Part shown: positions 16,693 to 61,832 of the stretch, piece after piece
Numbering within the stretch: the first letter of the stretch is position 1
Layout of the letters: each line of letters opens with the position of its first letter
NCBI GenBank assembly: GCA_050084985.1
Contig: JBITNC010000001.1
Location: forward strand, 98,208,001-98,272,000
Source: Nageia nagi
Lineage: Eukaryota > Plantae > Pinophyta
Length of the DNA stretch: 64,000 bases
Direction of reading: 5' to 3'
The notes under the pieces: generated by a model
What the model was told of the DNA's origin: nothing
Database searches by the model: none
Seen by the model: the letters and a program-made list of their open reading frames with translations, nothing else
Position numbers and translations under genes: made by a program

Positions 16693-17024
16693 CTACGTTG
16701 AAACTATAGTATAAGCAATGAACGTAAATTTCTGGTTTCAATATTTCACAAAATAGGTCTGTTTATAAATAATTAGCTTGAAAAGAAACAAGCATAAACG
16801 TAGCAATAACATGTGATAATACACTGCCAATCTCTTTCATAGCAACGTTATATATTTATTTCCAAACACATTGGCAGAGTTAGGAGCCATTAGTTGTCTT
16901 TAATCTCCCTCCATACAGTATTTTTGTTAAAAGGATGTAGGTAGTTTTCTAAACTTACTCAGCTCAAAAGAATGCATTAATAGGGAAAAAAAAACCTCCA
17001 ATAATTTTTCAGACATAATAGTAC

Positions 17025-17113
17025 CTGTACAACTCTGAATATGGCCGCCAGAAGTCGCACAAAACTTTCTGCAGATAGGCTTCTTAGCTTACTTGCTAGT
17101 GAAAGTCCCCCAC
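17025..17113 (-). CDS. VPS54: VPS54 exon 7
   Basis: CCAG acceptor, GGGLSLASKLRSLSAESFVRLLAAIFRVVQ, GTACTA donor; 89 nt. Confidence 0.9.
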
Positions 17114-17262
17114 CTGGACTACTAACTCATTAGCTATGTGACATAACAGTACAAATACTAGAAGTCATACTAGAAAACAAGTTCAAATAAAAAAATTCCA
17201 GAAATTCAAAACGTGCAGATAGCATGAAGAAAATGAAAAACAGAAATTAACACATGGAATAC

Positions 17263-17419
17263 CATCCACATCAGTTTGTCTTTCTCCTGCTATCAAATCA
17301 GAATCAAGGGGACGAGTGAACAGAACAGGAAGCAACTCTGCAACAGTAGTTTTAATGGAACCCTTAATGTCTGCAATCAGTGTTTCCCTATAAACCCTCA
17401 ATACAGCTGGAAGTTTTGC
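17263..17419 (-). CDS. VPS54: VPS54 exon 6
   Basis: TTCAG acceptor, AKLPAVLRVYRETLIADIKGSIKTTVAELLPVLFTRPLDSDLIAGERQTDVD, GTATTC donor; 157 nt. Confidence 0.92.
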
Positions 17420-33451: not shown

Positions 33452-34391
33452 CTGCAAAACATCACAAATAGTGAGCAGTCAAAGATTAAGCCTGGTCAAT
33501 GTAACTAAAGTAGGTCCAGTTCTAGAGCAAGTGAAACACATGAACTACAATAAACGCATTTACATAGGTAATCTACAAAAAATTAGTACATTTTTCCAAT
33601 AATAATGACAAAGCATCTTCAAAATAAAGAACTTTGATTTCAAATTATTAACAATAAAGATCAAAGAAAACCAAATTTTGGATTTGGATAAGGAGGCAAA
33701 ATAATGAAACTAAACAACTGCAGAGGATATTGCAAAAAGAAATGCACTTTATAGAAATTCCGGCCAAGTTGCTTGCAGAGTTGAAATCATCTTAGAATTT
33801 CATGCTCCAAATAAGCCAAGAATATTGCACAATCTAGGAGAAAACATTTACACTTTCATGTACAATCCAAATATGCAAGATGCCTTAATCATATGTTTAT
33901 GCATGACACTTACTAAATGCTAAAACTAATCTACTGTTTAACCATTCATGAGTCAAAATGGTAATATATAGTGATTCAGAGTTAGAATCCAAAAATTTAA
34001 ATTGAAGAATTATGTACCTTACTAAAGGGTTAAATATACCTGGAGATCAGCGCATGAATTGACATATCAGAAATGTATTTATAACATTGTTTAATTTGAG
34101 AAAAAAATAGCAGATAATTTAAGATTTAATTTTGTCTACGCACGGGGAAAAAATAAAACTTTATATTGCATTCCTTATATGTTCTTTTTCATAGAGTTTT
34201 GTGCAATTATTTGATGATTATCATTTTATTTATACTTGATTTGGGGGATTAATCCCTAAAAAGTATAATTTGATGAATTGAATACCTCAAGTTATTCAGG
34301 CTCCTGCATTTGAACCTTTGGATTTAATGAAAATAAGGTTAGGGCAACAAATACTAGAAAAATTGATGCTCCAATCCTGTCGAAGTGAGGG

Positions 34392-34868
34392 TTGGTGCGG
34401 AGAATCGAGCATAGGGAGCAACACCCTCATAAAGAAGACTATTGGAAATTCCCTCCAATCGGATGGCTGGCTATTAATTTTGATGGCTCTTTGAAAGGTA
34501 ACGCTGGTCCGGCGGGAGCAACAATAGTGATCAAAGACCATTTGGGAAGGATAAGGATGTTAGTTGTTAAACCATTAGGGCATCATACGAGTCACTTTGC
34601 AGAGGCTAGAGCAGCATTCATTAGCCTTTCCATTATTAGCAGATGTGATTGCGCCAACTGGGTCATCACGGACTATTCTCTGAATGTAATCAATTTGCTA
34701 AAGGGCAACTCTCCACCGGGGTGGGACATTAGTAATATGATGGAGGATTCAAGGCATATCATAGACAATGTAGAGCAGATCAGTATACTCCATGACTATC
34801 GAAAAGTTAATCACCTAGCAGATCGGTTAGCGGACGAGGTGGTGAACTTGGAGGAACGAAAAGTCTAG
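34392..34868 (+). pseudogene. Plant L1-type RNase H domain (RVT_3-like), 3' end of LINE ORF2
   Basis: WKFPPIGWLAINFDGSLKGNAGPAG..IVIKDHLG...AEARA...D.SLNVINLL...HDYRKVNHLADRLA, the characteristic D-E-D-D RNase H pattern. Confidence 0.9.
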
Positions 34869-35603
34869 GAAGCTGATTTCCCGAACCAATATCAGCTACT
34901 CGCAAAGGGAAGACCGGGATGAAGCCAACAAAAGAAGTTAGCAAGAGCCACACTCTCGGGTGGCCGCCAAATTTGAATTTCAAATTTTGGAGGGTGATAG
35001 TGGGTAGGAAGCCTTGGACTAGGTGGCTGAGTTAGGGTGAGCTGGAAACCAAGTGCCAAGTGCAAGTGAGCTAGAAGAGGGAGGCCTAATGGAGAAAAGG
35101 TTCCTTGGTTGATAGTTTCCTTTTAAGTCACATGATTACCGGGTAGGTGAGGTGGATTGTGTGTCAGTATAGGCCAGTTGATAGTCTGAGGTGGATAGGC
35201 GAGCTCCCTCACAGTTCTAAAAGTGCCCGGACAACTTACACAATAGAGAGGAGGAGGAGGTTACATCAACAGATTTGGAGGAGGAAAAAGCAGATGTTTG
35301 TCTTTTCCAAGGCTAGGAAGGACATGAACCCCCATGACATCATTGACCTCCCAATCTAGTAAGTGTTAGTCAAAGTGGCAAGGTGGAAAGCTGAGATGAG
35401 GGGGAACACACGCGGAAACCATCCAATCAAGGAAGATGTCATCGCGTACGGGGTGGCACTTACTTCTGTAGTCACTTCAACACGTTCAAGCCAAGCGAAC
35501 AAGGTTTTTCGAGGAGCTTCAGGCTCGAGGTGATAGTGTGTGGGGTTATTTGATCAAAGAGATGGTCAAAGGCATGCAACAAAAGAATAGGAGGCCAAAT
35601 GCC

Positions 35604-36430
35604 ATGGCACCGAAAGGAAAGGTGGATGCAAACAAACTAGAACCTCGTTTGGAGCCTCACAAGCTCGATGTCTCTCCCATAGTGAGAACTATTCTGGAAT
35701 TGGGGGGGTTGCTTAACTTCCTAGAGAAGTTGGAAGGCCACAATGAAGACATTTACAGGCAATTCCTAGAGAGTTGGAAAGGAGGGACGGTTAAGCTTTT
35801 CAGCATAGACTTCTAGGTGAACCAGAAGCTATTGGTTGAGGTCATAAGGCTATCAGTGATAAGAAAAACGTTGAGGAGAGACAACCACATCCTGAAGACT
35901 GAACTTCCCAAATTCTGTAAAGGAGGCCTAGAGCTACAGGAGAGAAACATGGCATGGTTGCTCGTTTGTCCCTCCCAAAGCTGTGGCCGGAAGTGACATT
36001 AGTCATCATGTAGTTTATAACTCTAGACACCACCGATCTATGGGCAAGGAGCTTTCCTGAATCATCTTAAAGGATCGAAGATGAACGTTTCAGCCTTCTT
36101 GTACGTGGAATTGGACAAAGTGGCCGAGCATTATCAGAAGAGTAATGGGAATGAGGTGTACCATCAGGGGTTAATCCTCATGGTGTTCACATTAATTATT
36201 GGGCAAATGGGTATTATTGATAGCTTCAAATGGGCTAGGTCGGAGGCACCTTCGGCCTCAGCTAGCAAGGAGGAAAGACAGCTCGCATCGTCGGAGAAGA
36301 AGCGAAGAATCAAATTTGAAGACGAAGACTAGCATCTTGCACGTATCGATGGGAGTGGAAGGAGATCCCTACTGTGGAAAGACAAGAGGGTGCCTTTGTA
36401 CGTGGAAAAGTCGGACTCGAAGGCCACTCT
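35604..36430 (+). pseudogene. Extra LINE 3' ORF, copy A (continues at ~43184-43510 after the copia)
   Basis: GCCATGG start; MAPKGK...FLEKLEGHNEDIYRQFLESWKGG...LPKLWPEV..IM*FITLD...FLNHL..MNVSAFLYVELDK..YQK....HQGLILMV. Homologous to 49934-50828. Confidence 0.7.
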
Positions 36431-39400
36431 TGTTAGAATTTGTAATGTAATATTACTCCATTCACTTAATACTTAAAGTATCATTAGATACTTTAAAGTA
36501 TTAAAAGAATAAAAATAAGTGAAAGATTAAAAATAGGTATAAGTTTAAAAATAGGTAAAGGATTAAAAATAGAAAAGGGATTAATTATAGAGTGGGTTTC
36601 TTCTTATAAAAATAGAAGAACCGTCCCCTTCTCTAGTTACACAATTGTAATGCAAGCTTTGCTATAGGTTTAGAGTGTGAGAGAGAGAAGAGATTTTGTA
36701 AGAAAGGTCCTTGAGAATAAAAAGATCTTAGTTAGTGGATGTACTCCCAAGGAGGTAAGAACCACTTTATATCTTGTGTTATTTGTGTGATTGGCTTTAG
36801 TTATTGTGCTATTGTGTTGATGTTGAAAGTGCCTTCTTGAGATCTTGAGTGATTAAAAGTTAATTCAGAAAGATCTTGGGTGATTATTGTGTTGATGTTG
36901 AAAGTATACCCCCCATTCCTTTAATTTTTTTTTTTGAAAAAAAAATCAAAAAGTAAAAAAAAACAATAAGTTTTTATTATTATTATTATTATTATATATA
37001 TATAAAGCTCCTTTTTTAAGTTACCTATTTTAAATAAGGTATATTTTTTTTTAAAGTTCCTTTTTATAAGGTATATAAAAGAAAAGGCAAAAGTTTTTTT
37101 AAAGTAATCTTTTTGTTTAAAAGAGGGGGAGATTTTTTTTTTTTGCCTTCATAAAATTGGGGGAGTTCCTATTTTTAGTTTTAAAGGAAGGAAATCCTGT
37201 TGGATTTAAAAGTTTTTTAAAAGAATGTTTTTTTAGGCTAATTTTATAAGCACGTTTATTTAGCCTAAAATTTCTTTATTTGCTAATTTTACCTTAAGTG
37301 CAAATGATTTTAAGTTTTTTTTAGCATGTCTTTAAGATAAAAAGTGGGGAATTAATTAATCATGTATAGATTAATGTTATGCATAGGTTAATGTTAATTT
37401 TATGCATAGGTTAAGGTTAATTAATTATGCATGGGTTAATGTTAATTATGTTTGAATTAATGTATGCATGAATTAATGTTATTTTATCTTAATGCATGTT
37501 TGACATGTAATGAGATAAAAATTTTAAATACATGTTTTAATTTTTTGTCCTAGTGCATATTTTTGGTAAGTGGATAAAATTTTTGCATAGTTTAATTTTT
37601 TGTCCTAGTGCATATTTTTGCTAAGTGGATAAAATTTTTAAAAATGCATGATCTAATATTTTGTCTTAATACATGTGGTTGGATAAAAGTTCACTTAAAT
37701 ACTTGCTTATGAATGCTATGTTAATTTGCAAATAAGGAATTATTTTAAGTCCATTTTTTAAGTAACAAGAGGGAAAATTCTTCATTTTTTATAATGAACC
37801 TTTGTAAAGAGTTCCATTAGGGGTTGTAACAAAACCCATTGGACTCTTAGGCTCATTTATGGTTACTTAAAATTAATGAACCTTGTGTAAAGAGATCCAT
37901 TAGGGGTTGTAACAAAATCCATTGGACTCTTTGGTTCATACTTATGGATAATGTGGGATGTAGTTTCATTTCTCAAAGCACTTTATTTTTTTTGCACTTT
38001 TACTTTATATGCAAAGTACGCAAACATTGAAAATTGCTTCCCCCTAAAATGAACACATTTGCACGTTTTTTCTGCAACATGACTTGTTTGGGCAGCCATG
38101 AGGTGAGGATAAAGCAGACTGGAGTCTTTTAATCTAACGATCCAAGTGGTGAAAAGTTTGTACTTCTTAATTGCCCCTAAGTCCTCTATTAATCTGGACT
38201 TAACTCCATACAAGTGGACAAGCATGTGTAGTGATACCACATGTTAATTTGGCTAATCCAACATACATCACAACCTTGGAAAATAGCTCGTACTTCTCCT
38301 TATGAAAGTATATCGTTGCCCAAGGAGAATTGGTTGAGGATTGGTAGGGCCTAGGCTCCTTGAGGGCATCCAAATGAAGGGCTAATTTATAAGAAAACAA
38401 CCTCAAATATTCTCTCCCTCGGGTGATATTGAGTAATGATAAAATGTTGGATATTTGGATATTTGTTTATGCATATGTTGATTATCTTTGCTCATGTAAA
38501 GATTAAGTTTGCAATAATGATGCAAATGTTTTATGATCATTTTTTTAATGGATTGTGATGAAAATATGCACATTAGTTTATATAATTGTGAATTTTCTTT
38601 TGTATCCTTGGTTAGATAAAATCTCTTGCTAAATAATGATAGTACACTTGTTGATATCCACAGTTGCAAATTTTTTGATGGAATAGTTAAAAGGTTCGCC
38701 CTTCTCCATGGTTACAAATTTTATGGAGTAGTTAAAAGATTCGCCTTTCTCCATGGTTGCAAATTTTGATGGAGTAGTTAGAAGGTTTTCCCTTCTCCAT
38801 AATTGAAAAGGTTTGCCTTATGCCACTTTACTTCCACTAGTAGAAAATTTATCCATTATGGATAAATACCAATTTACTTCTATTATTGGGAAGTGTATTT
38901 ATGCATTGATGGAGGTTGAATCCTTGTTATGGATTCATGCTACCTTCATCCATCAGTTGCATCTTGACTAGTAGCATGGTCAAGTTGGCTTTTTTATGTT
39001 TTGTACGTCTCTATAGAGAAGTTGACTTATGGCTTTCGATAGTTAAGATGTCATGGTCAAGTAAATTTTATCTTGTGGCATGGTAAATAAGGCATTTGTT
39101 TGAAGGTTTTCGTATAGCTTCTAATCTTGTGATCAAAATGCCTTAGTGATTGATTTGTATATTTGAAACTTCCCTCATGAATGGTGCATTAGTTGTTAGG
39201 GACAACGAAATGACTAGGAGTTTGGAAGTTGGTAAAGGTAATTCGTTTAACATTTCTAAAAGTATGAGTAACCATTTTTTAGATAAACAATTTCTTATGA
39301 TAGCCTATATACTTGAGGAAGATAAGGCAACAACTGCAACTAAACCTTTTTTCAGCTTGTGCATTCATTTTTGATGGGTTTGTTTCTGACTAAGTCGTTT

Positions 39401-42400
39401 AGGGGAGTGTCTTAAGTCTTGACCTTCATCAATGACTTTAGCAGGATAACATTCGGTTATCTTATAAAGCACAAGGATCAAACCTTTGATAGGTTCAAAG
39501 ATTTCAAAACCTTGGTAGAAAATCATTTTGGATTCAAAATCAAAATGTTAAGATCTGATAATGGGGGTGATTATAATAGCAATGAATTCAATTATTTTTG
39601 TACCAAGTATGGAATCAAGAGGCAGTTTACTATCCCTTACACTCCTCAGCATAATGGTATTGCCTAAAAGAAGAATAGATCCATTCAAGAAATGGCAAGA
39701 TGTATGTTGGGAGATCTTCCTAGCTTCTTATGGAGTGAAGCTATAAATTCTGCAATCTACATCTTGAATAGGTGTCCTACAAAAGTAGTTGAAGGTAAAA
39801 CTCCATATGAGCATGGATAAGAAAGAAACCTAACATCTCTCACTTTAGGGTCTTTGGCTATGATGCTTATGCCTTTGTTGTTCCTAAGAAAAGAAAGAAA
39901 TTTGATAAGAGATCCAAAAAGTGTATCTTTGTGGGCTATGACAATCAGCATAGAGGCTACAAGCTATATCAACCTTCTTCTCGTCCAGTTTTTGTATCAA
40001 GGGATGTAAAATTCAATAAACTACCTGAAGATTCTGTTTCTTATGAGAACCTTGATGAGGGTGATGATTCCTTTGTTGCTCCTAACTGGTTGGATGTCAG
40101 TGTGGATTTGTTACCTAAGGAACAAAACTCTCCAACGCAAAGGATAACAAGGAGTATGACTATGAATAAATCTTTATTTGCCAAAATTGATTGCAAGAAT
40201 GAGCCTCATCCTACAAAGAAACTTCAAAGCATGAGTGCTAGGTGAATGCTATGAATGTGGAGTATGAGGCTCTTATGAAGAATCAAACTTGGGATTTGGT
40301 TCCTTATCCTCATGAAAGCAATGTGATTGGAAATAAATGGATTTATAAAATCAAATATAACTCAGATGGAAAGATTGAGAAATACAAAGGAAGGTTAGTA
40401 GCTACGGGTTTCGCTCAAAAATATGGAGTTGATTATGAGAAAACCTTTGCTCCAATAGCAAAGATGCCTACTATCAAGGTAATCCTTGCTCTTTCAATAG
40501 CTTAGGGATGGAAAGTTTTACAACTTGATGTCAAGAGTGCTTTTCTCAATGGTGACTTAAATGTGGAAATCTACATGAATCAACCAGAAGAGTTTGTTGT
40601 TGAAGGCAAAAAATCTTTTGTGTGCAAGTTAAAGAAGTCTTTGTATGGACTTAAACAAGCACCAAGGGCCTGGTACAAAAATATTTCAGGATACTTAGAG
40701 GGCATTGGTTTTTCTAAATGCTTCTCTGACACAGATCTTTCTGTGCTCAACCAAAGAAAAGATTTGATCTTAATTCTTCTTTATGTGGATGATCTGTTGA
40801 TTACAGGGAATAATTTGGTCCTCATACAAAATTGCATATCCAAACTTAAGGCAACTTTTGATATGACTGATCTTGGTCTATTGCACTACTACCTTGGTAT
40901 GCAAGTGTACCAATACAAGGATTGTACTTACCTCGATCAATCAAAGTATATCTCAAATATCTTGCAAAAGTTTGGAAAGGAGGAGTGCAAGCATGCTGCA
41001 ATCCCAGTCTCCCCTGAAATCATTGTCTCTTAGTTCCAACTCTCAATTGGCAGACACTACGACTTACAGACAACTAATTGGTAGTCTTCTTTATTTGACT
41101 ATCTCTAGGCCAGATATTGCCTTTACTGTGAATTTGATGGCTTGCTTTATGGAAAAGCCATATGTTGTGCACTTCAATGTTGTTAAGCAAATTTTGAGGT
41201 GTGTTGCAGGCACTAAGGATCTTGCTCTCAAGTATGACAAGTTGTCCTTGTTTGTTCTCTCAGGATTCTCAAATTCTGACTTGAGGGAGATAGAGATGAC
41301 AAAAAATCAACCTTTGCTTATGTGTTTAGCATTGGTTCAGGTGCTATCTCTTGGGCTTCCAAGAAGCAACCTACTACTGCTCTCTCCACCACTAAGTTTG
41401 AATATCGTGCAATGTCAGTTGCAACCCAGAAAGCCATTTGGTTGAGGCATCTTCTGAAAGAAATAGGGTATAAACAAGTTCATCCATCTCAAATTTCTTC
41501 AGATAATCAGTCAACTATTGCTTTGGCAAAGAATCCAGTTTTCCATTCGAAAACAAAGCATGTAAAAATCCAAGCCCACTTCATCAGAAAGAAGGTTCTG
41601 GATGGTCTTATACACTTGCAGTATTGTCCATCAATCCTAAACTCTACTGATTTGTTCACCAAGCCCCTTCCTGAAGCTCAATTTTATAAGCTTAAGCAGT
41701 CTATTGGATTGGTGAAGTTGCTCTCAAAAAGGGAGTAAATGTTGAATTCTTGTTGAATCCAGTGTAATTTCTTCCTTCTTAATAAAGTTTTTGAACTTTT
41801 GTTTGGTTTGTATACTTTGTTTATACATTCCTTTGTTTGATAACTATAAATATGGACTTGGCATCTTAGTGATGACTTATAGTGTAACTACAGCTTTGTT
41901 CATCTAACTTTGTTTCTCTTGATTTATTCACTAACCGCTTTAGAAACTTTGTGTGCACACTTTGAAAGTTTCTTATGGTAGTGAAGTTGTCCTCAAGAGG
42001 GAGTGAAGGTTGAATTCATGTCTGTGACGAAAACTTCATCCCTAGGAAGCTATTTTTGTTGTATAATGTTGATCTAAATGTCCACCTTTGTGGTTAGTTC
42101 GCTCTATGTGAGGAACTCATGATACATTTTGTTTTGTTATCACTATATGAGGAATCAGTATGTGTTTGTTAGCACTGTTTGGTTATCCATATGTGAGTAA
42201 CTTATATATGCACATATACTTTTTGTTGTTGATCAACACATGTTTCTATATACAAAAAATGACTATAAGTATTGGCTTGCAATCTTTGTGATGACTTATA
42301 GTGCATCATTGATCAGTTTATGGATGACATTCCTTAGTTCATTTATCTTGTGATTGATATAAATGTTATATGATGCATCTAATTGATCTTGTTTATGAGC

Positions 42401-43178
42401 TGCTTGTAGCTTGCAGGTTTTATCTTGAGAATGCAAGTTACTTTGTGTGGGCAAGCTCATGGAGGTTCATATGTCAACTCAGAGTTGATCGACTACACTT
42501 ACAGTGAAACCAGTTGTGGTTAATGATTGTATTGTAAACCATTTTGTTAAATGGTATTGTAATGAGTCTCAAACTAAGATCTTGCTTATTTCTCAATGAT
42601 GTAAAAGTTCTCATCTCTGCTTATATCTCTTTGGAGGAGAACTCTCTCTTACTCTATCTTCTCTTTTTCTCTCTACACTCTATCCCAATATTACATTAAA
42701 GAGGAGTGTTAGAATTTGTAATGTAATATTATGTAATATTTCTTCTTAATGTAAATTCATTTAATACTTAAAGTATCATTAGATACCTTAAAGTATTAAG
42801 GGAATAAAAATAAGAGAAGGATTAAAAATAGGTATAAGTTTAAAAATAGGTAAAAGATTAAAAATAGAAAAGAAATTAATTATAAAGTGGGTTTCTTCTT
42901 ATAAAAAGAGAACCCTCCCCTTTTCTAGGTACATAATTGTAATGTAAGCTTTGCTATAGGTTTAGAGTGTGAGAGATAGAAGAGATTTTGTAAGAGAGGT
43001 CCTTGAGAATAAGAAGATCTTAGTTAGTGGACGTACTCCCAAGAAGAGAGGAACCACTTTATATCTTGTGTTATTTGTGTGATTAGCTTTAGTTATTGTG
43101 CTATTGTGTTGATGTTGAAAGTGCCTTCTTGACATCTTGGGTGATTAGAAGTTAATTCAAAAAGGGTTAATTTCTTCA
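36431..43178 (+). mobile_element. Two-LTR Ty1/copia retrotransposon with no recognisable gag/protease
   Basis: LTRs begin TGTTAGAATTTGTAATG at 36431 and 42707; 3' LTR ends TTCA at 43178; TSD ACTCT/ACTCC (4/5); PPT AAAGAGGAG. Integrase (LRSDNGG, TPQHNGIA), RT (KKSLYGLKQAPRAW, LYVDDLLI) and RNase H (ISWASKKQ, DNQSTI, DLFTKPL) span 39400-41738. Confidence 0.92.
37370..38800. repeat. Clusters of short tandem repeats in the copia 5' internal region
   Basis: TTAATGTTAATT..TGCAT repeats (37370-37500); ~57-bp GATAAAATTTT..GTCCTAGTGCATA units (37515-37670); ~80-bp AATGAACC..CCATTAGGGGTTGTAACAAAA pair (37792-37940); ~46-bp GGAGTAGTTA..TTCTCCATGGTT units (38665-38800). Confidence 0.8.
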
Positions 43179-45555
43179 ACTCCTAAGGAGGCCGAGGATG
43201 TTGAGCATGCGGTGGAGAAGTTTGTGGCAGCTAAAAGCCCTTTGAATGAACAAGAAGGCCTGGTCGGGGACCCTGAGGAGTTCGAGCAAGAAGGGAAGCT
43301 TAGTCTAGAAGGAGAGGACTCGTTGGAAGATACAGAGTAAGAGGAGAAGCTCCCGATCAAAGGAAAGCATGGTGCATCCGAAGTGGAGAAAGGCCTGCAG
43401 TCCACCTATTGGAGTAATATACTCAAAGTGGTTAGTTCGGCGAAGCATCTGCTGGAAGCAATGGGTAAGATTGTTCGTGATGTGGAGGCTGAGGAACGCA
43501 AGAAGTGATGGTGTTTTGTTATGCTTTAGTAGGTTGGTGGGATCGGTGGTTAATCTCTATTATGTTTTGTTGTTGTCTGTTAGGTGTCGAAAGGTTGTCT
43601 TATGTATGCTCGTTTTCTATGTGTTAGTCTTTAAGGATTTTGATTGTGGTTTTTGTCTAGCTATTGGGTGCTATCTAGCCATTTTGTTCTTTTTGAATTG
43701 TCTCTAGTTCAACCTCGTTCATAAGCTTAATTGCTTACCTTAATGGACATTGTAATGGGTTAGGATTCCCTTAAAAATCCGTCCTCCAATACAAGCGAAA
43801 AAAAGATACTAGAAAAGTTGAGACCTATAATGAACAACTTGTCTTCAAAGAGATTAGACAAAATTAAGCACTTCATTTCTTTTTTTTCTGGAGCTATTTT
43901 TGTCCATCTTGGAAATCTCAAACAAACTCAAAACGAAATTTATGTTTGGCCTCCATTGACTAGATATTGCAATTTTAATACAATTAGGAACCTTCCTAAT
44001 CCACAAGGAACAAGGATGCTTTATTTGGTGATATTAAATCTATTGAATTTAGAAGGATATGCATTATAAGATTTTGACAATTGATATGATAGATAGATAG
44101 TTGTCTTTTAAACCCACTGGTTTGTAAGACCTATCAAAGTTTATCCAGAAGTAAATATATATCATTTTAATTATTTGAATGATCATTTCTCATATAAAGA
44201 AAAACATTGAGCAATGCAAAGATATTCCAAGAAAAACAAGAATACTTCCAAGGACAATTGACCACAATCACTCACACCCACCCAATGAAAATACGGCATA
44301 TGACATGATCTTATGCTATTTTAAGTTTGAAAATGAGTTAATTATATATAATTGATTTGTGTACATTGCATGATCTTGCAAACTACCCTTGCTAACAACA
44401 CTAAATTAAACATGTTCCTTGATGCATCTCTTTCGATGTCTGTTGCTTCCCTGTACACCCACAACCAATAGTCCCTTTTGGTTGACACAATGCTGACCAA
44501 TATGTTGTTCGCCTCTTCAACATCAAGTCGTTCTAATTATGTGTACTTCACAATTAACACTAAATATGTCATTCTTATGCCTTATCCACCACTCCAAATC
44601 AACACATACCTCAAGTTCATGCCCTATGAACCATTGGTGTGATGATGAATATAAAACATTACATTGGAGACTTCATTTTGTTTTAGCTCATAAGCCTGCT
44701 TCAATCCCTTTTGTTTGCAAATAGTATGTTTGTCTCCTTGGACTTTCTATTATGAGACTCAACATATATGTTCTTTGTTTACAGTTTCCATATTGTTATT
44801 TGCTAAATTTTTTTGCTATGTCGACCAAAGGTTCTTGGTTTCATATATTAGGAGAGCAATTACTCAAAAGCATCACTATGTGCAAGCATTCTTAAGAACT
44901 TACAAATTAAGAACAATGGTTCAAGTTACCAGAAATTCTTTACTTCATTTTGTTTGTTCATTCGCAACAATGAAAGTAAGTAGAGGAATTGAGTTTAGAT
45001 TGGAAACGATATCAACATGTGTGCCAATTCCAAATATGCAAAAATTATCAGTTACAGAATCACATAGAGGTGGGCTTAGTTTATTTTTCAAGGATGAATT
45101 ACATCTTGTCAATCCAGAAGCTATCAGTTTAGATTGGAAACGATATTCCTTTGTTAGGAGCATGATTAAGTACACCCCATGATGCATATACATATCCCTT
45201 CTGCTATCTATTTAACTATTCAAGAATGTCTACCAACCATATCTCATATTTCGAAAATGTATTTTTCCTATCTAATAGGTAAATATCTTTACATATATAT
45301 TATATTGTAGAGACCTATGGGTCCAGTGGCTTCAGAGAAAACTCGATCCTATGGTTGATGGGTACAAATTGATACTTGTTTTGGGCTAGTACACTTTTTT
45401 GTTTTTTACGCTGCCTTCTCGTTAACCGCCAACTTTAATATATTTAAAAGAAAAAAAGGAATAGAATTGAAAAATTTAAGCAAAAGTTTAAATTACACAT
45501 GAACATTTGTATGTGAGTCTGTAAGGCTTGGAGATTTGGATTAAAGACTTTTTAG

Positions 45556-49297: not shown

Positions 49298-49600
49298 CAT
49301 GGTTACACGATGTCTCGAGGAGGAGGACAGTAGGAAATTGGGGGACGCATTTTGGAGACAAAGACCAGTTTTTAGTAAACAGCGAAGGGAACTTAAATAT
49401 CTATTAAAAAAATTTAATATATTTAAATTTAATTTAATTTAATAAAATTAAAAAATCATAAATTTAAAGTTTATATTTTATTTAAACATTAAATAAATAG
49501 ATATATAAATAAAATATATTTATTTAATAAACATAATTTAATGTAATAAATCATTTTTATTTATTAAATATGATTAAATTTAAATTAAATAAAAGTTAAT
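49298..49600. mobile_element. One end of a hAT-like MITE
   Basis: CATGGTTACAC resembles the CAAGGTTACAT TIR family and is followed by GGGGAC subterminal words and an AT-rich body. The other end was not found. Confidence 0.4.
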
Positions 49601-49603
49601 TAT

Positions 49604-51105
49604 GGACGATGAATGGGATTTATCTTTGCATGGATGCGAAACGGCTGGATGTGGCCGAAGAACACAAGCGAATGTGTCAAGTCACCTAGCTTCATGTGCA
49701 AGACCAGCTTTGTAGTCTGGAGTGTACCTAGGAAATCATGTCCCAAGATGACTCACATGAATGAAAGGAATGCACTGGAAGCCGATCCAGATTATGATTC
49801 ATGCCTGCACAAAGATTGAACATCTAAAGGGTGGAGAGCATGGCTCTAGAATTTAAGAACGATGGGGTGGAATGATTCGTCATCAGTAGCTGAGGAAAGG
49901 TTTAGAGAGCATATGCAAAAGGCTTTGATGGTAATGGCGGAAGGCAAGGCAAGAGGTTCTAAAGGGGGCACAAAGAATTACGCCCAAAACCATTGAAGCT
50001 CTTGGTCGGTGATGATGTTCAGGTGTTGAAAAACACCGATTATTGTAGTTTCTTGGAACTGTTTGAAGGCTATGATGTCATTGTTTTTCATCAAATGGTG
50101 AATAGCTGGTTGGAGGGATGTGTGATTGTAGGCTCTTTTATGTTCGAGATTTTACCAGTGGTTTTGGCTAAGATTTCGGGTCTAGCAGGTGTAGATTTGA
50201 AAATTCAAAGGGACAAGCACCCACAGCAAACCGAGTTGGATTTCTTCATGTCGAGCGAGAAGATTAGGTGGGATGGGAAGTATATTATGAGGGAAGGCTT
50301 ACCTCAGCCTTGGCCAAAAGTTGCACATACCATCATGAATTATGTTACCATCTCGCCATTCTGAATCATATGCGTTGGAAGAAGAGGGTCAATGTCCCAT
50401 ATTTCCTATTCAAGGAATTGGAAAAGGCTGTAAAAGACTTCCAAAAAGGAAGGACCAAATTTGCATTGCACCAAGGACTATTCCTGGTTGTAGCCAAACA
50501 TATGGCTAAGAAGCAAGGGTGGATGGGGGACCAATATGATTTTATGCCAATTCTGAAGGAGGAGAAGGATGGTGCTGAGTTTGGAATGCAAGGAGGCAAT
50601 CGTAAGCATAAAGTGATGAAGGAGGCTGATAGTGGGAGGCGTAGCTCGATGCGTAAAGGCAAAGTGCTGATGAAAGAGGAATCGAAGGACTCGGAGGAAG
50701 CCACTCCCCCGACATCCTTGATTGCTGGTCAAAGTTCTTTGAAGAAGGTTCGTGTGAGTAGGGGTGTTTTGTTGAAAAAGATAGGGGCACTACGTGGAGC
50801 TATGTTGGCAGGTCTGAATAGATCATAGCCCAGATAGATAAGCTCCAGCAATTTGTGTGTGATGAGTTGGAAGTTTAATTTCTTCGTATGTTGCTTATGT
50901 TTATTTTGGCCGATAAGCGTATAGGTTAATTTACACCTTTGGAAGGCCTTATGTAGATAGGATGCCAACAGGCATAGTAGTTATAGTAATATGTTACAAG
51001 AAGGCTTTTTGTGCCAATTTAGATCTGTATTGCAGAATTCAAAGCGTGATTGTAATCAGGGTTATTGGTTCCCTCCAAAAACCACCTCTAATATTATCAA
51101 AAAAA
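49604..51105 (+). mobile_element. Second, shorter 5'-truncated retroposon carrying the extra 3' ORF (copy B)
   Basis: Broken ORF 49934-50828, homologous to copy A; T-rich trailer; tail motif and A-run at 51052-51105 like copy A. Weak AT-rich TSD AAAAGTTAATTAT / AAAAATTAAATAT. Confidence 0.7.
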
Positions 51106-52919
51106 TTAAATATCACACTTAATATCCAACTGCTACAAGGTTGTACATTACAAAAAACTAAAAGGTGTCTATGATTACAAATTTTAACAAAAATAATATC
51201 CAGGCATATATACTTTTCTATATTGTACTCTGAATTTCCAACATTTGATAGAGATCTAAGAGGATATTTCAATTTCCAAAAGAACTCTTATTTCTAAGAA
51301 TGGTTGATAATGAAGAAACCACCTACATTATAAATATTAACTGGAAGCCATGTATAGTGCAAAAGAGGTAAGCAAAGACTCCCTGCATTATTTGTATGAA
51401 CTGAAGAACAAACCAAATTGAAATTATCAATCATTTTTGGTGTGATCAATTGCATATCCCAAATGACACACTTCATGTTACTACCTAAACTCAAGATTCT
51501 TTTATGATAAAATATTCAATCTTCATTTAAGGTGAATAGCTGGCTGACTGACTGCATTGAAACGTTTTCCCCTGGTGAGACAATGAAGAATCAATGTATT
51601 AATCAAGTTTGGCTACATACGCAGCTGTGCTGATTATTTTATTTTCAATGAATAATAGGAGGAAAGTTACGAAGTATCTTGAATCAAATTATTTCTTTGA
51701 TTAAAATAGCAATTTCAATATTGTCAAGAATATATCTTTTAAAATATTATTAAATTTTAAAAATATATATGTGCTATTAGGTGTATTTTAAGAGATGTTT
51801 CACACAAATGTAAACAACTTCAGTGGTGTTCTGCTGAAACCTAAGCCCTGTATTGTCTCCACTAAACGATGTACTGCACTGAAAAAATGTTTGAGCAGAA
51901 ATGGCAATTTCTATTGAGAATGAATACCTTTTTTTCCAAATACCTCTTACATGGTTCATTTTTGTATGTATTTGATGTTGATTTGGAAAAGAATGTATGA
52001 AAATGAAAATGTGAGATTCTATTTTTTTTCTAGAATTTTTGTGGAGTCTTTTAACTGAATTCAAGTCCAATTCATAAAATAGGCTTGCTGAGTCCAAGCC
52101 AAGCCCAAGTCTCAACACAAATGGTTTGAAGTTTCACAACATATTATGTAGATCCTACAATATGAAGTTTTACATATTATAAATCATAGAATCTAACATA
52201 GTTAAACATAAAAATTCATTTGGCTACACTCAGGATTATAGAGTAACTAATTTGATGACATTGACCTCAATTTCAACTATTTTGTGAACAAAAAGCTTTT
52301 TCAGTGAAATTTATGATGATACATGGTATAAAACTTAACTTTGTAATATTATGAAGAATGTAGAATCAACAGAAAATAGCCAAAAGGTAAGTTCAAATTT
52401 GTTGCCAATTTCCCCCCTTAGATATTCAAGTAGTCAAATATTTAGACATCAAAGAATTGCAACAATTCCACTGTATTCCATTACATACTTTGATTAGTGC
52501 AACTAGCATCTATAAGTGTCTTCACTGGATTTGATTAATGTAACTAACATCCACACTCCATATCATTGTTGCTTACAACATTTTAAAAAAGACATGATAT
52601 TCTTGATACCTATTTGTAAAAGCTCCAATGTATAAAAAAACATATCTGAAACTGTCAATAGATATCCATCTTGAGGCATCTATATTTACATCGAAGTTAC
52701 TAATCTTAAGAGACACTTCGAAATGTATACCTATCATAAATGAATTTTAGATTTCTAAGCTAGTAGCACCTACGGCAAAGATATTATATTGTTATTATAT
52801 TTGAATATTAAACCTTATATCAAAGATACAAGGGGCATGTTTCCCAACCTTGGGGCGGCATCCCTATCATTGTCATATCCCAAACCATGAAAACGGAAAA
52901 GGGAACGTTTCCCCGCGAT

Positions 52920-53249: not shown

Positions 53250-56200
53250 CATTTCCTTTCCACCCTATCTACATCTGCAACCCTTCGCCTCATTCACATT
53301 TGCAATGCTCTACTTCATTCGCTAGTGCTAGTTTCTCCTGTACGTCTCTTCCTTTTGTCCACTTGCATCTGCAACCATTGCACATTCTTCCACCTAACAT
53401 CTAAGTTTCAAAATTGATTCTTTTCTCCGCAAACTTGCAATGCAAAACTCTTTCCGCTCGCACAAGAATGTGCACGTTCATCGGTCAAGTTTACTCGTCC
53501 TCATGTGTGCTTCCATCGGCTAGATCTGTGCATCCTTACCCAAGTTGTCTATGCACTTTGTTTTGTGCAACTGTGACTGGTCAACCATGACTACACTAAC
53601 TATGGCTATGCAAATAACAACGATGACTGTGACTATGTAGACATGACTATGACTATGTAGACTTGCTTAAGACGATACATACTATGCAACAGCCAACAAC
53701 TACAACTGCCACCCACAATTAGACTTCATGCATCCAAAACAGGCTTCATCACACAACTCAGTAAAACAATTTTGAAAAGCAATCTCCTACCAACATATCT
53801 TCAAATAGATAACATCCCTTCAAAAACTATTGAATACAAAGACTAGCATCATACTCTCCCTGCAAGATCATGTTAACGATGGCAGTCAGCTCATTAAGGA
53901 TCTTCAAGGCAAGATACAGGACCAACAAGCTATTATCATTCAATTATAGAGTGTGCACACAAAACGGTCTCTTCAGAACTCTCCTAATTTCCAATATGAA
54001 TTCTCAAGGATTTCGAAAGAGTAGGTTGCTCTTTTAGTTGAACAAGAACATCTTACGAAAGAATCCACTTAACAAAGTTGGAAATTAGTTGATCAAAAAT
54101 CATGGGTTGATGTAGTGGTTGAGAAGAAGAATCCCCCACCTCTAATTGAGTTTGCAGTTCAAGCTAAGTTTGAAGCGAAAAGAGTCTGCAAAGCTAAGGC
54201 CCTCAATCTTAGGGTTCATAACAATGGATCCGCTTCAAGTAGGCAACACCTTCATTGAAAATACTCGAGTTAACAAACATCAACCTAGAGAAAGCATGGG
54301 TCTCTCCTAATTCCACATCGGTCATACACTTTAAGAATGTCAAAAAGCATTTGAAGGCCTTAGGGGACAAAAGGAAAAATTCAAAAATCTCTACAACAAG
54401 ATCTTTCTCAATGAGAATCTTACATGATTATAGGTTGATGAATAGGTAGCAGTAGCCAAAAAAGCCAACAAATGGAAAATAATTTTTAGCCTACATGCAA
54501 TCATTAGTAACTCTCCTCCTCCAACCATAAGCCTTTACCTACGAAATGACTTTTGGAATGAAAAGGGGGGGGCTAAGGAGTTGGCCACAGCTTGCTAGAA
54601 TTGTAATGGTATGACATGGTTTGCCCTTGGATCCCTTGCAAAAGTGATCAGAGGGTATGATATTATCCTCATATGTGAGACACATGAAAGCCCCAAGCAA
54701 GCCCTACACCCATCACTAGTTACTTTTGGTGGTCTAGGTATTGACAAGGTCAGTACAAGTTGTTGCTCTTAATTGGATAGAATCCATGCCTCAATGATAC
54801 TAGTATCCTCAAATCCCCATTCCAGATTCTTGTGGATTAAAGACTCTTGTGGATTAAACTCCATCATCACCCCTTTCTTCAAACATTTCATTCCCATTTG
54901 CTACTTCGCCCCAAGCATGTATAACTTTGCTATCCACATTGATAGGGACCCATACGAGGAGCTTTCTAAGGACATCACTAGGCATGCAACTATAAGAAAG
55001 GTTATATTGCTAGGGGACTTCAATGCTCAAACTAGCTTTATGCATGTGCCTCTCCATGACATCATAGCAAATGAGATGCAAACTCATGAATTAGATTTTG
55101 ATCACCTTGGTTTTGTTATAACCTCCATAAACACACAAGTTACAACTTACAGGAAACATCTTTTGGAGTTCAAAAAATCCAACAAGCTCATTATTCTCAA
55201 TGGACTATCTTGTTTCCCAAACTTTAGAGGGCGCACCCATTTCCCTCACAACGACGAAGCTAGTGCCCCGAACTATGCTCTTTCTTCCACCACCCTCATC
55301 AAGTTCATTTCTCACTCCAATGTTTATGATCACTCTCCCCCCTTATCGATTACTATGTACTCTCTCTCACTATCTCCACCATTACACCCCCTATTAATCT
55401 ACCACCACCTTCCTCAACTACCTCCACCTGGGTTACAATACAATTTTACTACAACTATTCCACTACCTATAAGGATCATTTGTGTCAAGTTTTTCCTATG
55501 CTTTCATCTCTCCCTCCTGTTGTCGATTGTACTACCTTCTTAGTTAAGCAATTTGGTATGCTACGATAGATTCTTACCCCCACACCATCCACACCCCTCC
55601 TCGCTCCACATGCCACTATCCCATGACCATTTGGTATAATGAGGATTGTAAATATATGCACTAAAGATTGAAACATACCATTCAATACTCTTCTTAGCTC
55701 ACAACCACCTCCTACAAAGCCTAAAAATTGCTCCTTCGAAAGCAAAAACAACTCTTCCTCTATCAATGTAGACTAGATCTCATTCATTCCCTCCAAAACT
55801 CCCCTAAAACCTTATGGTGCCTTATCCTCCCCAAAGATCAAGCCAAGAATGGGATGAGTCTTTCCACTTGGACCAGTCATGCCTCATCCCTCTATACCAT
55901 CCCTAATCAACTTACCATTAGGGTACCTTCCCCCCTACTTCCTGCCACCATCTTTTGTACAAGACATATCAAGCAAGCTACCAGAAAACTTTGCACCAGC
56001 AAAGCAAGAGATTTAGGCATGTTACAAGCGGAATTTCTAAAGCATAGCATCAACTCACTTGTTATGCCCCTTATCGATCTCTTCAACCTTGTTGTCTACT
56101 TCATCTTCCCTCACTCTTGGACTTAGCATATCCTCCACCCAATCCATAAGATGAATACCCACACAAACCCAACAATTATAGGACCATCGTGATTGGACAT

Positions 56201-56960
56201 GTCTTTGCTAAGCTTTATGCCACAAAATTAGGTGTGCTTCTCTCTCACATGTTGGAGGAGGGGAGGCACAATGCCACGAGCCCGATTTTTGGTAAGACCA
56301 ATAGAGAACAAATCATATCCTAGTCCTTGTGACCATTATTAAGGTGTGTTCTAGATCTTCGAGAGTTATTGTTTCTTTGTTGACTTTTGACACAATACCT
56401 TGGCATTTGCTACTTGGAAAGCTTTGGTCAATTGGCATCTCTAGATAGCTTTTAATAGCAATATCACGATTGTATGAGACAATGATAGGTCGGTTTCACT
56501 CTCCACAAGGACTTTCAAACAACATTCTCAACACCATAGGAGTGGAACAAGGTTGCCCCGTTTCTCCAACACAAATTAACAAACATCCTACTTATTCATT
56601 GGGAGTCCCTCACCGCCTCCCATTCCAGAATAAGGAGAGGATACTCAATGAGATCCGAAAGGACATTAGTCTCCCGTATACTAATTGCTCATGGATCTCT
56701 CCTACCAACCCTCTCTCCCCCAAGTTGTCTTTCTATCACAAGCACTTTCTTCAAATATAAGACAGTTGGATAGTCCCTCCAAAATACCTTATAATGCATA
56801 GCCTATGGATCCTAAGTGGACAAACTAGAGCATGTTCCCACCAGCTTCCCGTTGAATCAAATCACCACATGTCGAGGGATGAGCAAAACTGCCTATTTTG
56901 CTCCTTGGGAGAAGTAGAAACCCTTGGGAGAAGTAGAAACCCTATACAACATTAACATGT
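53250..56960 (+). mobile_element. Decayed LINE with APE endonuclease and RT (RTE/RTEX-like)
   Basis: DIILICETH, VILLGDFNAQT, LIILNG (endonuclease); NNYRTIVIGHVFAKLYA, FVDF, TIGVEQGCPVSP (RT); C-terminal RACSHQLPVE...CLFC..GEVE. Probable ORF1 remnant at 53800-54500. The 5' boundary is approximate. Confidence 0.8.
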
Positions 56961-57039
56961 ATGCCTTTCATATAATTTTTCTAGAAGATTTAAAACACAT
57001 CATCTTTGGCATATTGCGTACCTATTTATAAGCTTAAAT

Positions 57040-58100
57040 AAATTTGATTGAAATCAGCTTGTGTCCTTTAAACTTTGGTATAACTAATCTAAATTCATTG
57101 GCAAGTCACCCAAGGTCTTCAATCATTGTGCTTCCAAGACAACATCAAACTTTGCTAAATCAATTACATAAAATCAGAATTTCATTGGATAGTTTTCCAA
57201 CTGTAATTTCATGCCTTTTATCATTCCTATGCACTTCATTACACTCTCATTTGCCATTAATTCCTGAAAATTTGGTAGTGAATCCACTTTTGGTCATGTA
57301 GACACCACTAATTTTGCATCTATGAAGTTATGAATGCTAACTAAATCAACAAGAATCGCCACAGTTCTTCACTTCACTTTGTTGTTCACTCTTGAAAGTG
57401 TGATATTCGGGAATGCCCATCATGGCAACAAGAGAAACAATTTGTATTTCTTCTTGTTTTGAGTCTTATGCAAGGTTTTCAATCACTTAATTATCAATTT
57501 TAACCAAGTGTTTAAGTTCTTCATTCACAAGTTCAATCATATGAATTCTTCCAAAAGATTTCCACTTATGCCCCTTTAGCCACACCTCCTTACCATTGAA
57601 ATGAGGGCCCTTAGAGTATAAGTCTACAATCACAGCATGATCTAGTACCCTTCCCTTTGGCCATCCAACATAGGAATTAATGGGAAATTGGATTTCATGG
57701 TGCTCTTTGTTTCTACCCTTGTTATGAAAAAAAATTTAGAGGCAATTCATGTAGTAAACCAACTCCTAAACACTCTTAATAGGCTTATACTTGTTTAATG
57801 GGTTCCTCAAGAGATGTAGGTTTCAAAGCTTTAACATAGCCTCTAATTGAATCTTTTAGTCCATCAATGTACATGGCAACAAGCCTTCTTGTAGAGATAT
57901 TCCCTACAAGTGAACTAGCTTGTTGGAACTCTTCTAAACAGTAAGCTATTGTCCCTTGTTGCTCCATGGTCTTGAGAGCCAAGATATAATCTTTTGAGTA
58001 TATGCCTCAAAATTCTTATAGAAGAAATCAATAGGATCTTAGTTGATCATTTAGGTCATGGGGGTGTTTGGAGATCCACGAAGGTTCAAATCCCAAAAAC
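57040..58100 (-). mobile_element. Decayed gypsy gag-protease fragment
   Basis: ORF 57785..57982 QQGTIAYCLEEF...MYIDGLKDSIRGYVKALKPTSLEE (Retrotrans_gag), and a downstream AILVD...HNFIDAKL protease-like motif. Confidence 0.75.
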
Positions 58101-60400: not shown

Positions 60401-60935
60401 ACTTCTGCATGATCAAATATTCAGATACCAAATATATAGTTTAATGATTTTCTTTCTTGAATATAGAGGGAAATTTCTTTTGCCTAATTTGATAGTGGAT
60501 CCCACTTAGTATATGGTGAGGTGACACACATTTCCACATTCTTCATGAAGCTACACAATTCCTTAAGTGTAATATTCAATTGTTTTGGACCTGACCAATA
60601 AGATTAATGAAACTGAGATTACCATTAGCTGCAAATAACAACAGCATATGGTTTATAGACCTAAGTGTGACATTAAAATACATAGGTTTCACCTCACTTG
60701 TAATGAGTGACAACTCATAAACCGAACAATAAGTATTTCAATTTGATCAGACACGTTGTTTAACAGAGTAAAATACATTTCCATATAATTTGACTTGTAA
60801 GAATGTTGTCCACAATCGCAATACCAAATACTATAAATGTATTCTCCTACAAGACAAAGAAAAACTATAATACATAAAATAATTAAGCAGAAAGACATGA
60901 AAGTGAAAAACGAAAAAAGATACAATAATACATAC

Positions 60936-61832
60936 CAATTTCAGTGCAGAAAGGGCTTGATTAACATAATAAATAAGCTTCAATTTTTTATGGAGAGCAA
61001 CCATATCTGCACGCTTCATGTTCAATTCCTGGATTTGTCTAGCAGGCTCCACCAGATCCGCATCCAAGAGTTTCACAGTAGCCTTCAATTCCTGAAGCTC
61101 GCCACATGCCTCCACTATCTTCCCGCTCAAATCCTGCAGCTGGCCCTGCGCCTCAAAAAACGAATCTGACCTAATAGAGATCTCCTTCACCAAGTGCACC
61201 TCCACAATGTCCAAATAATGAGACAACTTCTCCTGCAGCATAACATTCTGGGGAATTGAAGAAAAAGGGCACGCTGCCTGGAAAGTGGCTCCATCTTCTA
61301 GGGCAAAATCCTCCTTAAAATACAAAGACGGAATTTCCCTCAAGCAAGCCACCAGTGCCTCCCCCTGCCCCCGGACTTGCCCCTCTGGCGAAACACCCCC
61401 AATCTGATCACCATTTTCCCTGTTAGAATGCTCCCTTATGTCTTCAAATTTCCCATAGGATTCATAAATGGAGTCCAGGTAGGGTTGGAAGTCGGATTTA
61501 CTTATTTCAGGAAATTGTTTGGACACTGTTACAGGGGCGGTATCAAGGGAACTCACGGAACCCGAAGGCCACCAAGCTGCCCAAGTGGCATCCGAACTGT
61601 ATACACCGGCCTTGCCAAGGTGAGGATTGTTGAGAATGGAAGCCAAGCTTTGGCCCCCATTGTACAGAGCTGAGTCCAGATCGAATCCCGATCGGCTTTG
61701 CGAAAGTAAAGAAGGCGAAGAAGAAGAGGACTTACCTAAAGAAACTGAAAGCGCCCTCTTGCTAATTTCCAAGCTCTTAAATTTCCTGTTACTGTTATCG
61801 TAGGCATCTGTCCTCGACCCTGCCCCATCCAT
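60936..61832 (-). CDS. VPS54: VPS54 (GARP complex subunit) coding exon 1
   Basis: ORF track 60831..61832 encodes ...QSLASILNNP...EALVACLREIPSLYFKEDFALEDGATF...LQEKLSHYLDIVEVHLVKEIS...YVNQALSALKL, matching the plant VPS54 N-terminus. GT donor (GTATGT) begins at 60935; 897 nt, phase 0. Confidence 0.95.

Follow-up and report, generated by a model that had tools for sequence, protein, structure and literature searches.

A single retrotransposition-type insertion in the genome of the conifer Nageia nagi contains the RNase H end of an L1-type long interspersed nuclear element (LINE) and, downstream on the same strand, a decayed open reading frame (ORF) that belongs to a protein family carried elsewhere by short, polyadenylated retroposons. 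The insertion occupies positions 34367-43805 of the DNA analysed here, 64,000 nucleotides of contig JBITNC010000001.1 (positions 98,208,001 to 98,272,000, forward strand), which we call the window and whose own numbering is used throughout. Descriptions of plant LINEs give them two ORFs, and the accessory genes on record come mainly from long terminal repeat (LTR) elements and Mutator-like elements (MULEs). An earlier note, made from the letters of the window alone, had assigned the insertion to a LINE lineage with three ORFs. We favour, at a probability of roughly one half, a different reading, in which an L1 3' end and one short ORF-bearing retroposon together make up a composite locus.

Results

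Structure of the insertion

The unit is bracketed by a 16-bp target site duplication (TSD), whose forward-strand copies at 34351-34366 (ATACTAGAAAAATTGA) and 43806-43821 (ATACTAGAAAAGTTGA) agree at 15 of 16 positions. One in 200 shuffled 16-mers reached a match of this quality anywhere in the 10.7 kb upstream. The 3' copy follows directly on an A-tail at 43798-43805, read as seven As (43798-43804) and a G (43805), and both copies coincide with steps in base composition, from a GC content of 0.43-0.48 inside the unit to 0.30-0.34 in the flanks. The poly(A) 3' end and variable-length TSD typical of target-primed reverse transcription are thus both present (A7; 16 bp at 15/16). Within this one TSD pair lie, in order, an RNase H C-terminus, a spacer, the same-strand ORF split by a nested Ty1/copia element, a 3' untranslated region (UTR) and the A7 tail, and the unit measures about 2.69 kb once the copia element is subtracted. 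In all of this our analysis agrees with the earlier note, which had delimited a unit of about 2.7 kb by the same TSD and A-tail and had described the nested copia element, the L1-type RNase H end and a spacer of about 0.7 kb.

The RNase H piece (34389-34868 on the forward strand, including its stop codon at 34866) represents the C-terminal domain of a 5'-truncated L1-type ORF2. Its 159 stop-free codons (34389-34865) match the Pfam family RVT_3 over profile positions 1-122 of 123, with an E-value of 3.9e-15. The unit begins just 22 bp upstream, which marks the copy as 5'-truncated. Neither an APE endonuclease nor an RVT_1 reverse transcriptase (RT) was found between the TSD copies at 34367-43805, an absence to be expected because of this truncation. 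It is the RVT_3 match that points to a LINE origin for the 5' part of the unit (34367 to about 35290); a protein search restricted to the length band of the RNase H piece returned no relatives of it.

The 735-bp spacer that follows (34869-35603, forward strand) is non-coding, with about 17 stops in the frame of the ORF. It could consist of an L1 3'UTR joined to a retroposon 5'UTR, with a junction near the A5 run at 35286-35290. This run stands 313 bp upstream of the ATG at 35604, within the range of 5'UTR lengths seen in the short units described below. When sought in the spacer, neither an internal L1 3' end nor a 3' box gave a significant match, and Rfam had no match in the window.

The decayed ORF and its 3' end

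The ORF of this first copy of the family (copy 1) begins with the ATG at 35604, in the strong context GCCATGG, and comprises an N-terminal part at 35604-36430 and a presumed acidic C-terminal part at 43184-43508, both on the forward strand. It is a pseudogene. The frame is open for 70 codons to a first stop at 35814, and later in-frame stops fall at 35994-36026 (four), 36330 and 43338, the last of these inside the C-terminal part and ahead of the final stop at 43506; in total the ORF carries at least six in-frame stops and probably two frameshifts. For similarity searches it was used as separate natural pieces, without joining, consensus building or repair. The family profile matched 35652-35804 at positions 23-73 (E = 3.4e-9) and 36051-36197 at positions 159-208 (E = 7.8e-5). 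A weak match of 35957-36010 to positions 124-141 lies in a different frame, and two frameshifts are therefore implied. Removal of the copia element and one copy of its own duplication leaves the codon phase unbroken across the empty site (…SDSKAT[L/P]KEAEDVE…). The piece beyond that site shows no homology to the C-terminus of the Ginkgo family by profile search or hhalign; it is presumed to belong to the ORF by its frame, its acidic composition and its position before the 3'UTR box, and the homology to the family that can be demonstrated for copy 1 is limited to the N-terminal domain.

The strong-context ATG and the read-through across the copia site had both been claimed correctly in the earlier note. 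Its second ORF stands as a same-strand former gene, recognised by phmmer and profile matches, but is not open, and its acidic tail holds as to frame and composition, but not as a segment with detectable homology to the family.

Downstream of the ORF is a T/G-rich 3'UTR of about 290 nt (43509-43797, forward strand) that ends in a family 3'-terminal box at about 43752-43797. The same box precedes the A-tail of a second copy in the window (copy 2): the two boxes align with a score of 14, against -8.3 +/- 4.0 for shuffled sequences, none of which reached it in 1000 trials, and the boxes of the window copies resemble the Ginkgo box at levels reached by 38 and 7 of 1000 shuffles. As this diverged terminal box stands directly before both A7 tails, 43797/43804 is independently identified as a true retroposon 3' end.

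Copy 2, which is absent from the earlier note, lies at 49575-51106 on the forward strand and was recognised by tblastn, by the family profile, by hhalign, as a GC island and by its 3' box. A 5' region of about 340-365 bp is followed by an ORF at about 49939-50828 that contains a frameshift, by a 3'UTR with the 3' box and by A7 at 51100-51106. The profile matches 49990-50352 (E = 1e-18) and 50328-50522 (E = 7e-15), and the hhalign probability is 98%. The 5' boundary and TSD of this copy are uncertain in an AT-rich flank; no RNase H was found within 49575-51106, and the spacer of copy 1 showed no homology to the region upstream of the copy 2 ORF. The layout is consistent with a discrete short retroposon unit.

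The protein family

A phmmer search with the piece at 35472-35813 against 1.84 billion representatives returned 15 matches. Among the matches are short ORFs of public assemblies, 53-62% identical, whose first residues, MAPKRK…, start at the codon corresponding to ATG 35604; the same start codon is used by the homologues P0003, P0005, P0006 and P0015, which begin MAPK or MAAK. The longer matches are Ginkgo biloba gene models, and a search seeded with one of these gathered about 58 proteins, again nearly all Ginkgo biloba gene models. The nearest Ginkgo members share 35-51% amino-acid identity with the window copies and represent a diverged subfamily. Judged by these matches, the copy 1 ORF is a former gene of a real protein family and not a chance reading frame.

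Neither RVT_1, RVT_3 nor any other retroelement Pfam domain occurs in any of the roughly 58 family proteins, and no LINE ORF1-type domain (DUF4283, zf-CCHC, RRM or Transposase_22) was found by Pfam in family members. For the window pieces, copy 2 and 36 family members, Pfam returned no match even at E<=10, including Transposase_32 (PF20167) and the plant mobile domain (PMD; PF10536). Scans of viral contigs and genome contigs found nothing. Six Ginkgo models (P0024, P0032, P0038, P0069, P0070 and P0071) fuse the ORF to PPR, RuBisCO large-chain, TIR, cellulose-synthase, receptor-kinase and ribosomal L3 sequences; these are probably annotation chimeras arising from intronic insertions, as is typical of transposon copies in introns.

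The N-terminal domain of family proteins spans about 210 residues and is followed by a linker rich in Ser, Glu and Lys, which includes an RKRK stretch, and by a C-terminal helix, the best-conserved part. The AlphaFold model of the full-length protein was too poor for use (predicted local distance difference test, pLDDT, 40), and a model of the N-terminal domain built from 56 sequences reached pLDDT 64.5 and a predicted template modelling score (pTM) of 0.65. Its sole notable neighbour in the PDB is DNA-bound VANC21, which both Foldseek and an independent all-against-all aligner retrieved. Foldseek gave a probability of 0.69, a template modelling (TM) score of 0.44 and E = 0.2; VIA-align gave Z 5.0, a value within the chance range, with a root-mean-square deviation of 5.0 A over 166 of 215 residues and the next match at Z 2.8. 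PDB sequence searches with two family profiles gave nothing meaningful and lent no sequence support to this likeness, which we treat as a weak lead from a predicted model and not as an assignment. A Transposase_32 cluster at rank 15 of an ESM Atlas search (score 0.85) is likewise a weak lead; the same search with copy 2 was uninformative. As to the likeness to the 'putative plant transposon protein' that the earlier note had suggested, neither Transposase_32 nor PMD matched any piece or any of the 36 members, and what speaks for it are the weak ESM Atlas and VANC21 leads.

Ginkgo-type copies are short poly(A) retroposons

The carriers of the ORF could be read most fully in Ginkgo-type loci, twelve Joint Genome Institute (JGI) metagenome contigs that hold about eight distinct copies. 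Here the unit is about 1.7 kb long: a 5'UTR of 250-306 bp, an ORF of 393-394 codons and a 3'UTR of about 230 bp with the terminal box, flanked by TSDs of 14-16 bp. About 230 bp past the stop codon the units end in a common box (…GGACCTTTCAACACCCCTTCTACCTTAAT), after which comes A(n) or (TAA)n; the last letters before A(n) read …CCTTTCAACACCCCTTCTACCTTAAT. This box of about 45 nt, which immediately precedes the A-tail, has changed less than the remainder of the UTR in copies otherwise 25-35% diverged.

At the other end, contigs L003, L005, L007, L008 and L011 have one terminal 5' sequence in common. TSDs were identified in L003 (13/14, 299 bp ahead of the ATG), L005 (15/15, 251 bp) and L011 (15/16, 306 bp), and the homology between L007 and L011 ends at the TSD of L011. 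The starting points are therefore not scattered as 5' truncations, all five informative copies having one common start 251-306 bp ahead of the ATG, and no RNase H was found upstream of the ORF within up to 10 kb in these contigs. Together, the shared 5' terminus, the TSDs and the common 3' end mark the Ginkgo element as a discrete retroposon of about 1.7 kb. A fixed 5' end, one ORF, the lack of an RT, a poly(A) tail and TSDs are all found in Ginkgo-type copies, as befits an ORF-only poly(A) retroposon. The earlier note's claim that the ORF lies at a retroelement's 3' end, within poly(A) and TSD bounds, holds for copy 1 and for the Ginkgo-type copies, and copy 2 likewise sits at a poly(A) end.

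The Ginkgo 5' terminus was also sought in the spacer of copy 1 and at the start of copy 2. The best pair was equalled in 8 of 300 shuffles, uncorrected for six tests, and an nhmmer profile of the terminus matched neither region. We rejected the idea that the Ginkgo 5' end is itself a remnant of an RNase H C-terminus, as Smith-Waterman comparison against shuffles was not significant and codon periodicity was absent; a search with the 5' region of L007 matched P0013 only. The copy in L004 is inserted into the endonuclease region of another LINE, with A11 between the two. An ORF1-ORF2 order for L004, with the endonuclease-like ORF following the family ORF, was rejected, since these two ORFs are separated by the A11 tail and the 3' box.

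Several contigs (L004 at 2869-2920, L006/L007 and L009/L010/L011) end in inverted duplicates of contig sequence, for example T11 with the reverse-complement 3' box and an identical flank, which have the look of assembly fold-backs rather than of second insertions. In L012 the 3' end of the family copy is cut short, with a truncated box and without an A-tail, and 4.5 kb further downstream (15694-17304, forward strand) there is a region with Ty3/gypsy-like RT and integrase.

Selection on the ORF

L004 and L007 each retain an intact ORF (394 and 393 codons) despite a DNA difference of about 30%; that of L002 carries one stop and that of L005 two. Differences at codon positions 1/2/3 of the ORF range from 0.21/0.12/0.41 to 0.22/0.14/0.60, and in the 5' region they are flat (0.27/0.35/0.32); second-position differences in the ORF stay at 0.12-0.15, against 0.41-0.60 at the third position. 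The third-position bias and the intactness of diverged ORFs therefore show purifying selection along the element lineages, and the flat pattern indicates that no protein is encoded in the 5' region and that the ORF truly starts at the Met. The measurement of dN/dS across copies proposed in the earlier note could be carried part of the way: Ginkgo-type copies include intact ones and show the third-position bias, and L004 and L007 differ by a dN of 0.22, but dS is saturated.

Nested copia element and other features of the window

The element that splits the copy 1 ORF is a degenerate Ty1/copia LTR retrotransposon at 36431-43178 on the forward strand. Its LTRs (36431 to about 36935 and 42707-43178) are 91.5% identical, and it is flanked by a 5-bp TSD matching at 4 of 5 positions (ACTCT at 36426-36430, ACTCC at 43179-43183). 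The integrase domain rve (39419-39664, E = 6e-11) lies upstream of RVT_2 (40563-41030, E = 5e-36). An LTR pair, a 5-bp TSD and an integrase upstream of RVT_2 characterise Ty1/copia elements, and the LTR pair with rve and RVT_2 confirms the nested copia element that the earlier note had claimed. In place of the gag/protease region (36936-39100) stands AT-rich sequence with a GC content of 0.23-0.38 and several tandem repeats of periods 17-55. The 5' LTR has an internal duplication of about 47 bp that the 3' LTR does not have.

Elsewhere in the window, a degenerate LINE fragment lies at 54611-57300 (forward strand), where ORFs at 54611-54772 and 54773-55543 resemble an APE endonuclease, with a faint match to Exo_endo_phos_2 (E = 0.09). 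By eye, the fragment resembles the LINE in L004 at 1459-2868; neither the family ORF nor RNase H was detected near it. On the reverse strand, 60831-61832 holds an ATG-initiated ORF of 333 codons without a Pfam match, which we take to resemble the N-terminus of a VPS54-like host protein and to be probably a host exon.

Discussion

Origin of the locus

Under the composite reading, the ORF would be the gene of a separate and conserved family of short poly(A) retroposons, built from a non-coding 5'UTR of about 0.25-0.37 kb, an ORF of about 390 codons, a 3'UTR of about 0.23-0.29 kb ending in the box, and A(n), with no RT encoded. Such elements would be copied by the endonuclease and RT of a LINE through target-primed reverse transcription, leaving TSDs of 14-16 bp. 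Selection would keep the ORF since its product helps the element's own RNA; the protein might bind nucleic acid or form part of a ribonucleoprotein, or it might act on chromatin or against silencing in the manner of VANC/PMD proteins. Within the one TSD pair at 34367-43805, such a unit would have been placed together with the final 0.9 kb or so of an L1, comprising its RNase H end and part of its 3'UTR. This might have come about by read-through of an L1 into a retroposon copy lying downstream (3' transduction), by a template switch of the RT from retroposon RNA to L1 RNA, or by insertion of the retroposon into the A-tail of an L1; the copia insertion would have split the ORF later. On this account the composite locus taken by itself offers no evidence of a tricistronic LINE.

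Decay across the unit is uneven, with no disabling change in 159 RNase H codons and at least eight in about 440 ORF codons. We estimate the chance of an unchanged RNase H under equal decay at about 0.08, and the pattern would fit read-through from a still active L1 into a retroposon copy that was dead by then. Several observations pull the other way. One TSD pair holds both parts. In the spacer no A-run exceeds five, a second TSD is lacking, and neither an L1 3' end nor a retroposon 5' terminus can be recognised, so that no junction is demonstrated. A longer LINE could have given rise to copy 2 and the Ginkgo units. Finally, the Ginkgo evidence comes from another species and from the diverged subfamily noted above (35-51% amino-acid identity).

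The main alternative is a heritable L1 lineage with three ORFs, in which the family ORF is a third cistron between ORF2 (endonuclease, RT and RNase H) and the 3' box with its poly(A). Copy 1 would then be an ordinary 5'-truncated copy, and copy 2 and the Ginkgo units truncated or secondarily independent derivatives with ORF3 only, comparable to the mammalian HAL1 elements discussed below. The single 15/16 TSD and one A-tail around RNase H, spacer and ORF, the even GC content and the lack of an internal A-tail or junction are what such a lineage would leave, and in every case the ORF takes up the 3' end of its poly(A) element, ahead of a conserved box, like a LINE's own 3' end. Yet the linkage is absent from every readable related copy, the five Ginkgo-type starts are fixed about 0.3 kb before the ATG and not scattered, no gene model of the family contains an RVT domain, the RNase H part and the ORF have decayed unevenly, and the other LINE fragment of the window (54.6-57 kb) is without such an ORF. 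We regard this lineage as possible, at less than even odds. The three-ORF claim of the earlier note is accordingly right in that, at this locus, the ORF was inserted jointly with an L1 RNase H end, but each of the informative related copies, five Ginkgo-type loci (three with TSDs) and copy 2, lacks RNase H. That note had also reasoned that relatives of the ORF unlinked to L1 RT or RNase H would speak against its idea; in Ginkgo they are unlinked (5 loci, about 58 models), although this is a species other than that of the window. A more specific version, a seed-plant L1 lineage whose third cistron encodes a VANC/PMD-like chromatin or anti-silencing factor and whose ORF3-only derivatives became the independent, selected 1.7-kb retroposons of Ginkgo, seems to us doubtful.

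Two further explanations dispense with a transposon gene or with a joint insertion. The copies might be processed pseudogenes of a host multigene family, perhaps PMD-like, with the fixed 5' end as transcription start and the '3' box' as mRNA end. They are indeed intronless and have poly(A), TSDs and a fixed 5' end, and the Ginkgo annotators called them genes. Copies about 30% apart in DNA nevertheless each keep TSDs, poly(A), an open or nearly open ORF and a strong third-position bias, and the retention of ORFs across such divergence therefore indicates that the retroposed lineages themselves are under selection, as in a transposon family. Besides, no intron-bearing parent gene was seen, and the terminal box is better conserved than the remaining UTR; we consider a host origin of this kind improbable. 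Very improbable, in our view, is a mere chance adjacency of an old L1 fragment and a retroposon copy with a fortuitous 16-mer repeat. The region is AT-rich, and a 15/16 repeat in 10 kb can occur by chance (1/200 shuffles), but this repeat falls exactly at the 5' GC step and directly after the A-tail that follows the family 3' box.

Comparison with known systems

At least two seed-plant genomes contain non-LTR retroposons with poly(A) tails that carry a conserved, selected and unannotated protein family, and intact copies exist. About 58 Ginkgo 'genes' are retroposon copies, some of them fused to unrelated domains by gene prediction. A non-exhaustive literature search found no description of this family or of any protein-coding, non-autonomous poly(A) retroposon in plants.

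A survey of L1 elements in 125 plant genomes reports ORF1 and ORF2 (RVT_1 and RVT_3) only and no sense ORF beyond RNase H; as additional ORFs it names the primate antisense ORF0 and mammalian antisense ORFs (PMC5203782). Copy 1 shares with the L1-clade LINEs of plants an RVT_3 RNase H C-terminus, a poly(A) tail, a 16-bp TSD and 5' truncation, and differs from them in its sense ORF downstream of RNase H. If the three-cistron version with a VANC/PMD-like product were true, this would be the first accessory gene, possibly a counter-silencing one, on a plant non-LTR element.

Mammalian L1 3' transductions and template-switch chimeric retrocopies place one TSD pair and a poly(A) tail around a LINE segment and a foreign transcript in the same orientation. 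Copy 1 resembles them in having one TSD pair and one poly(A) tail around both segments. Unlike them, it shows no recognisable junction hallmark, such as a source A-tail or source TSD, and its 'foreign' part is a retroposon with its own 3' box.

Two reports describe VANC21 of the Arabidopsis MULE VANDAL21 as a sequence-specific anti-silencing DNA-binding protein (PMC5735166, PMC10398659), and a 2026 report finds it structurally homologous to the PMD protein MAIN (PMC13547354). PMDs are known on Ty3/Gypsy elements and MULEs as well as in genes (PMC5418596); in the literature compared we found no report of one on a non-LTR retroposon. VANC21 and the present family are alike as accessory proteins borne by plant transposons, and VANC21 is the top structural neighbour of the N-domain model. 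The family nevertheless has no sequence similarity to VANC21 and no Pfam PMD or Transposase_32 match, its carrier is a non-LTR retroposon, and the model reaches only pLDDT 64.5. Should the protein prove VANC/PMD-like, transposon-encoded chromatin and anti-silencing factors would extend to non-LTR elements and to gymnosperms, with a bearing on the origin of the plant mobile domain.

Pairs of short interspersed nuclear elements (SINEs) and LINEs with a common 3' tail, as presented in two reports (PMC5786205, PMC3747384), offer a parallel for the 3'-terminal box of about 45 nt before the A-tail, conserved across copies diverged by 25-35%. The family differs from such pairs in its length of 1.5-1.75 kb and its protein-coding capacity.

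The closest known kind is HAL1 ('half-L1'), a term that occurs in PMC5753468 and PMC4161310. Bao and Jurka are said to have described the HAL1 elements as mammalian non-autonomous L1 derivatives that keep one ORF and use L1 ORF2p in trans. Both are short poly(A) retroposons with TSDs, one conserved ORF and no RT, presumably mobilised by LINEs. The ORF of HAL1, however, is L1 ORF1, whereas the family ORF has no detectable relation to LINE ORF1 types and lies, in one copy, downstream and not upstream of ORF2. On a strict definition, by which the ORF derives from ORF1 of the partner LINE, the family falls outside HAL1, no member having an ORF1-type Pfam domain; in general build, HAL1 is nonetheless the element that it most resembles.

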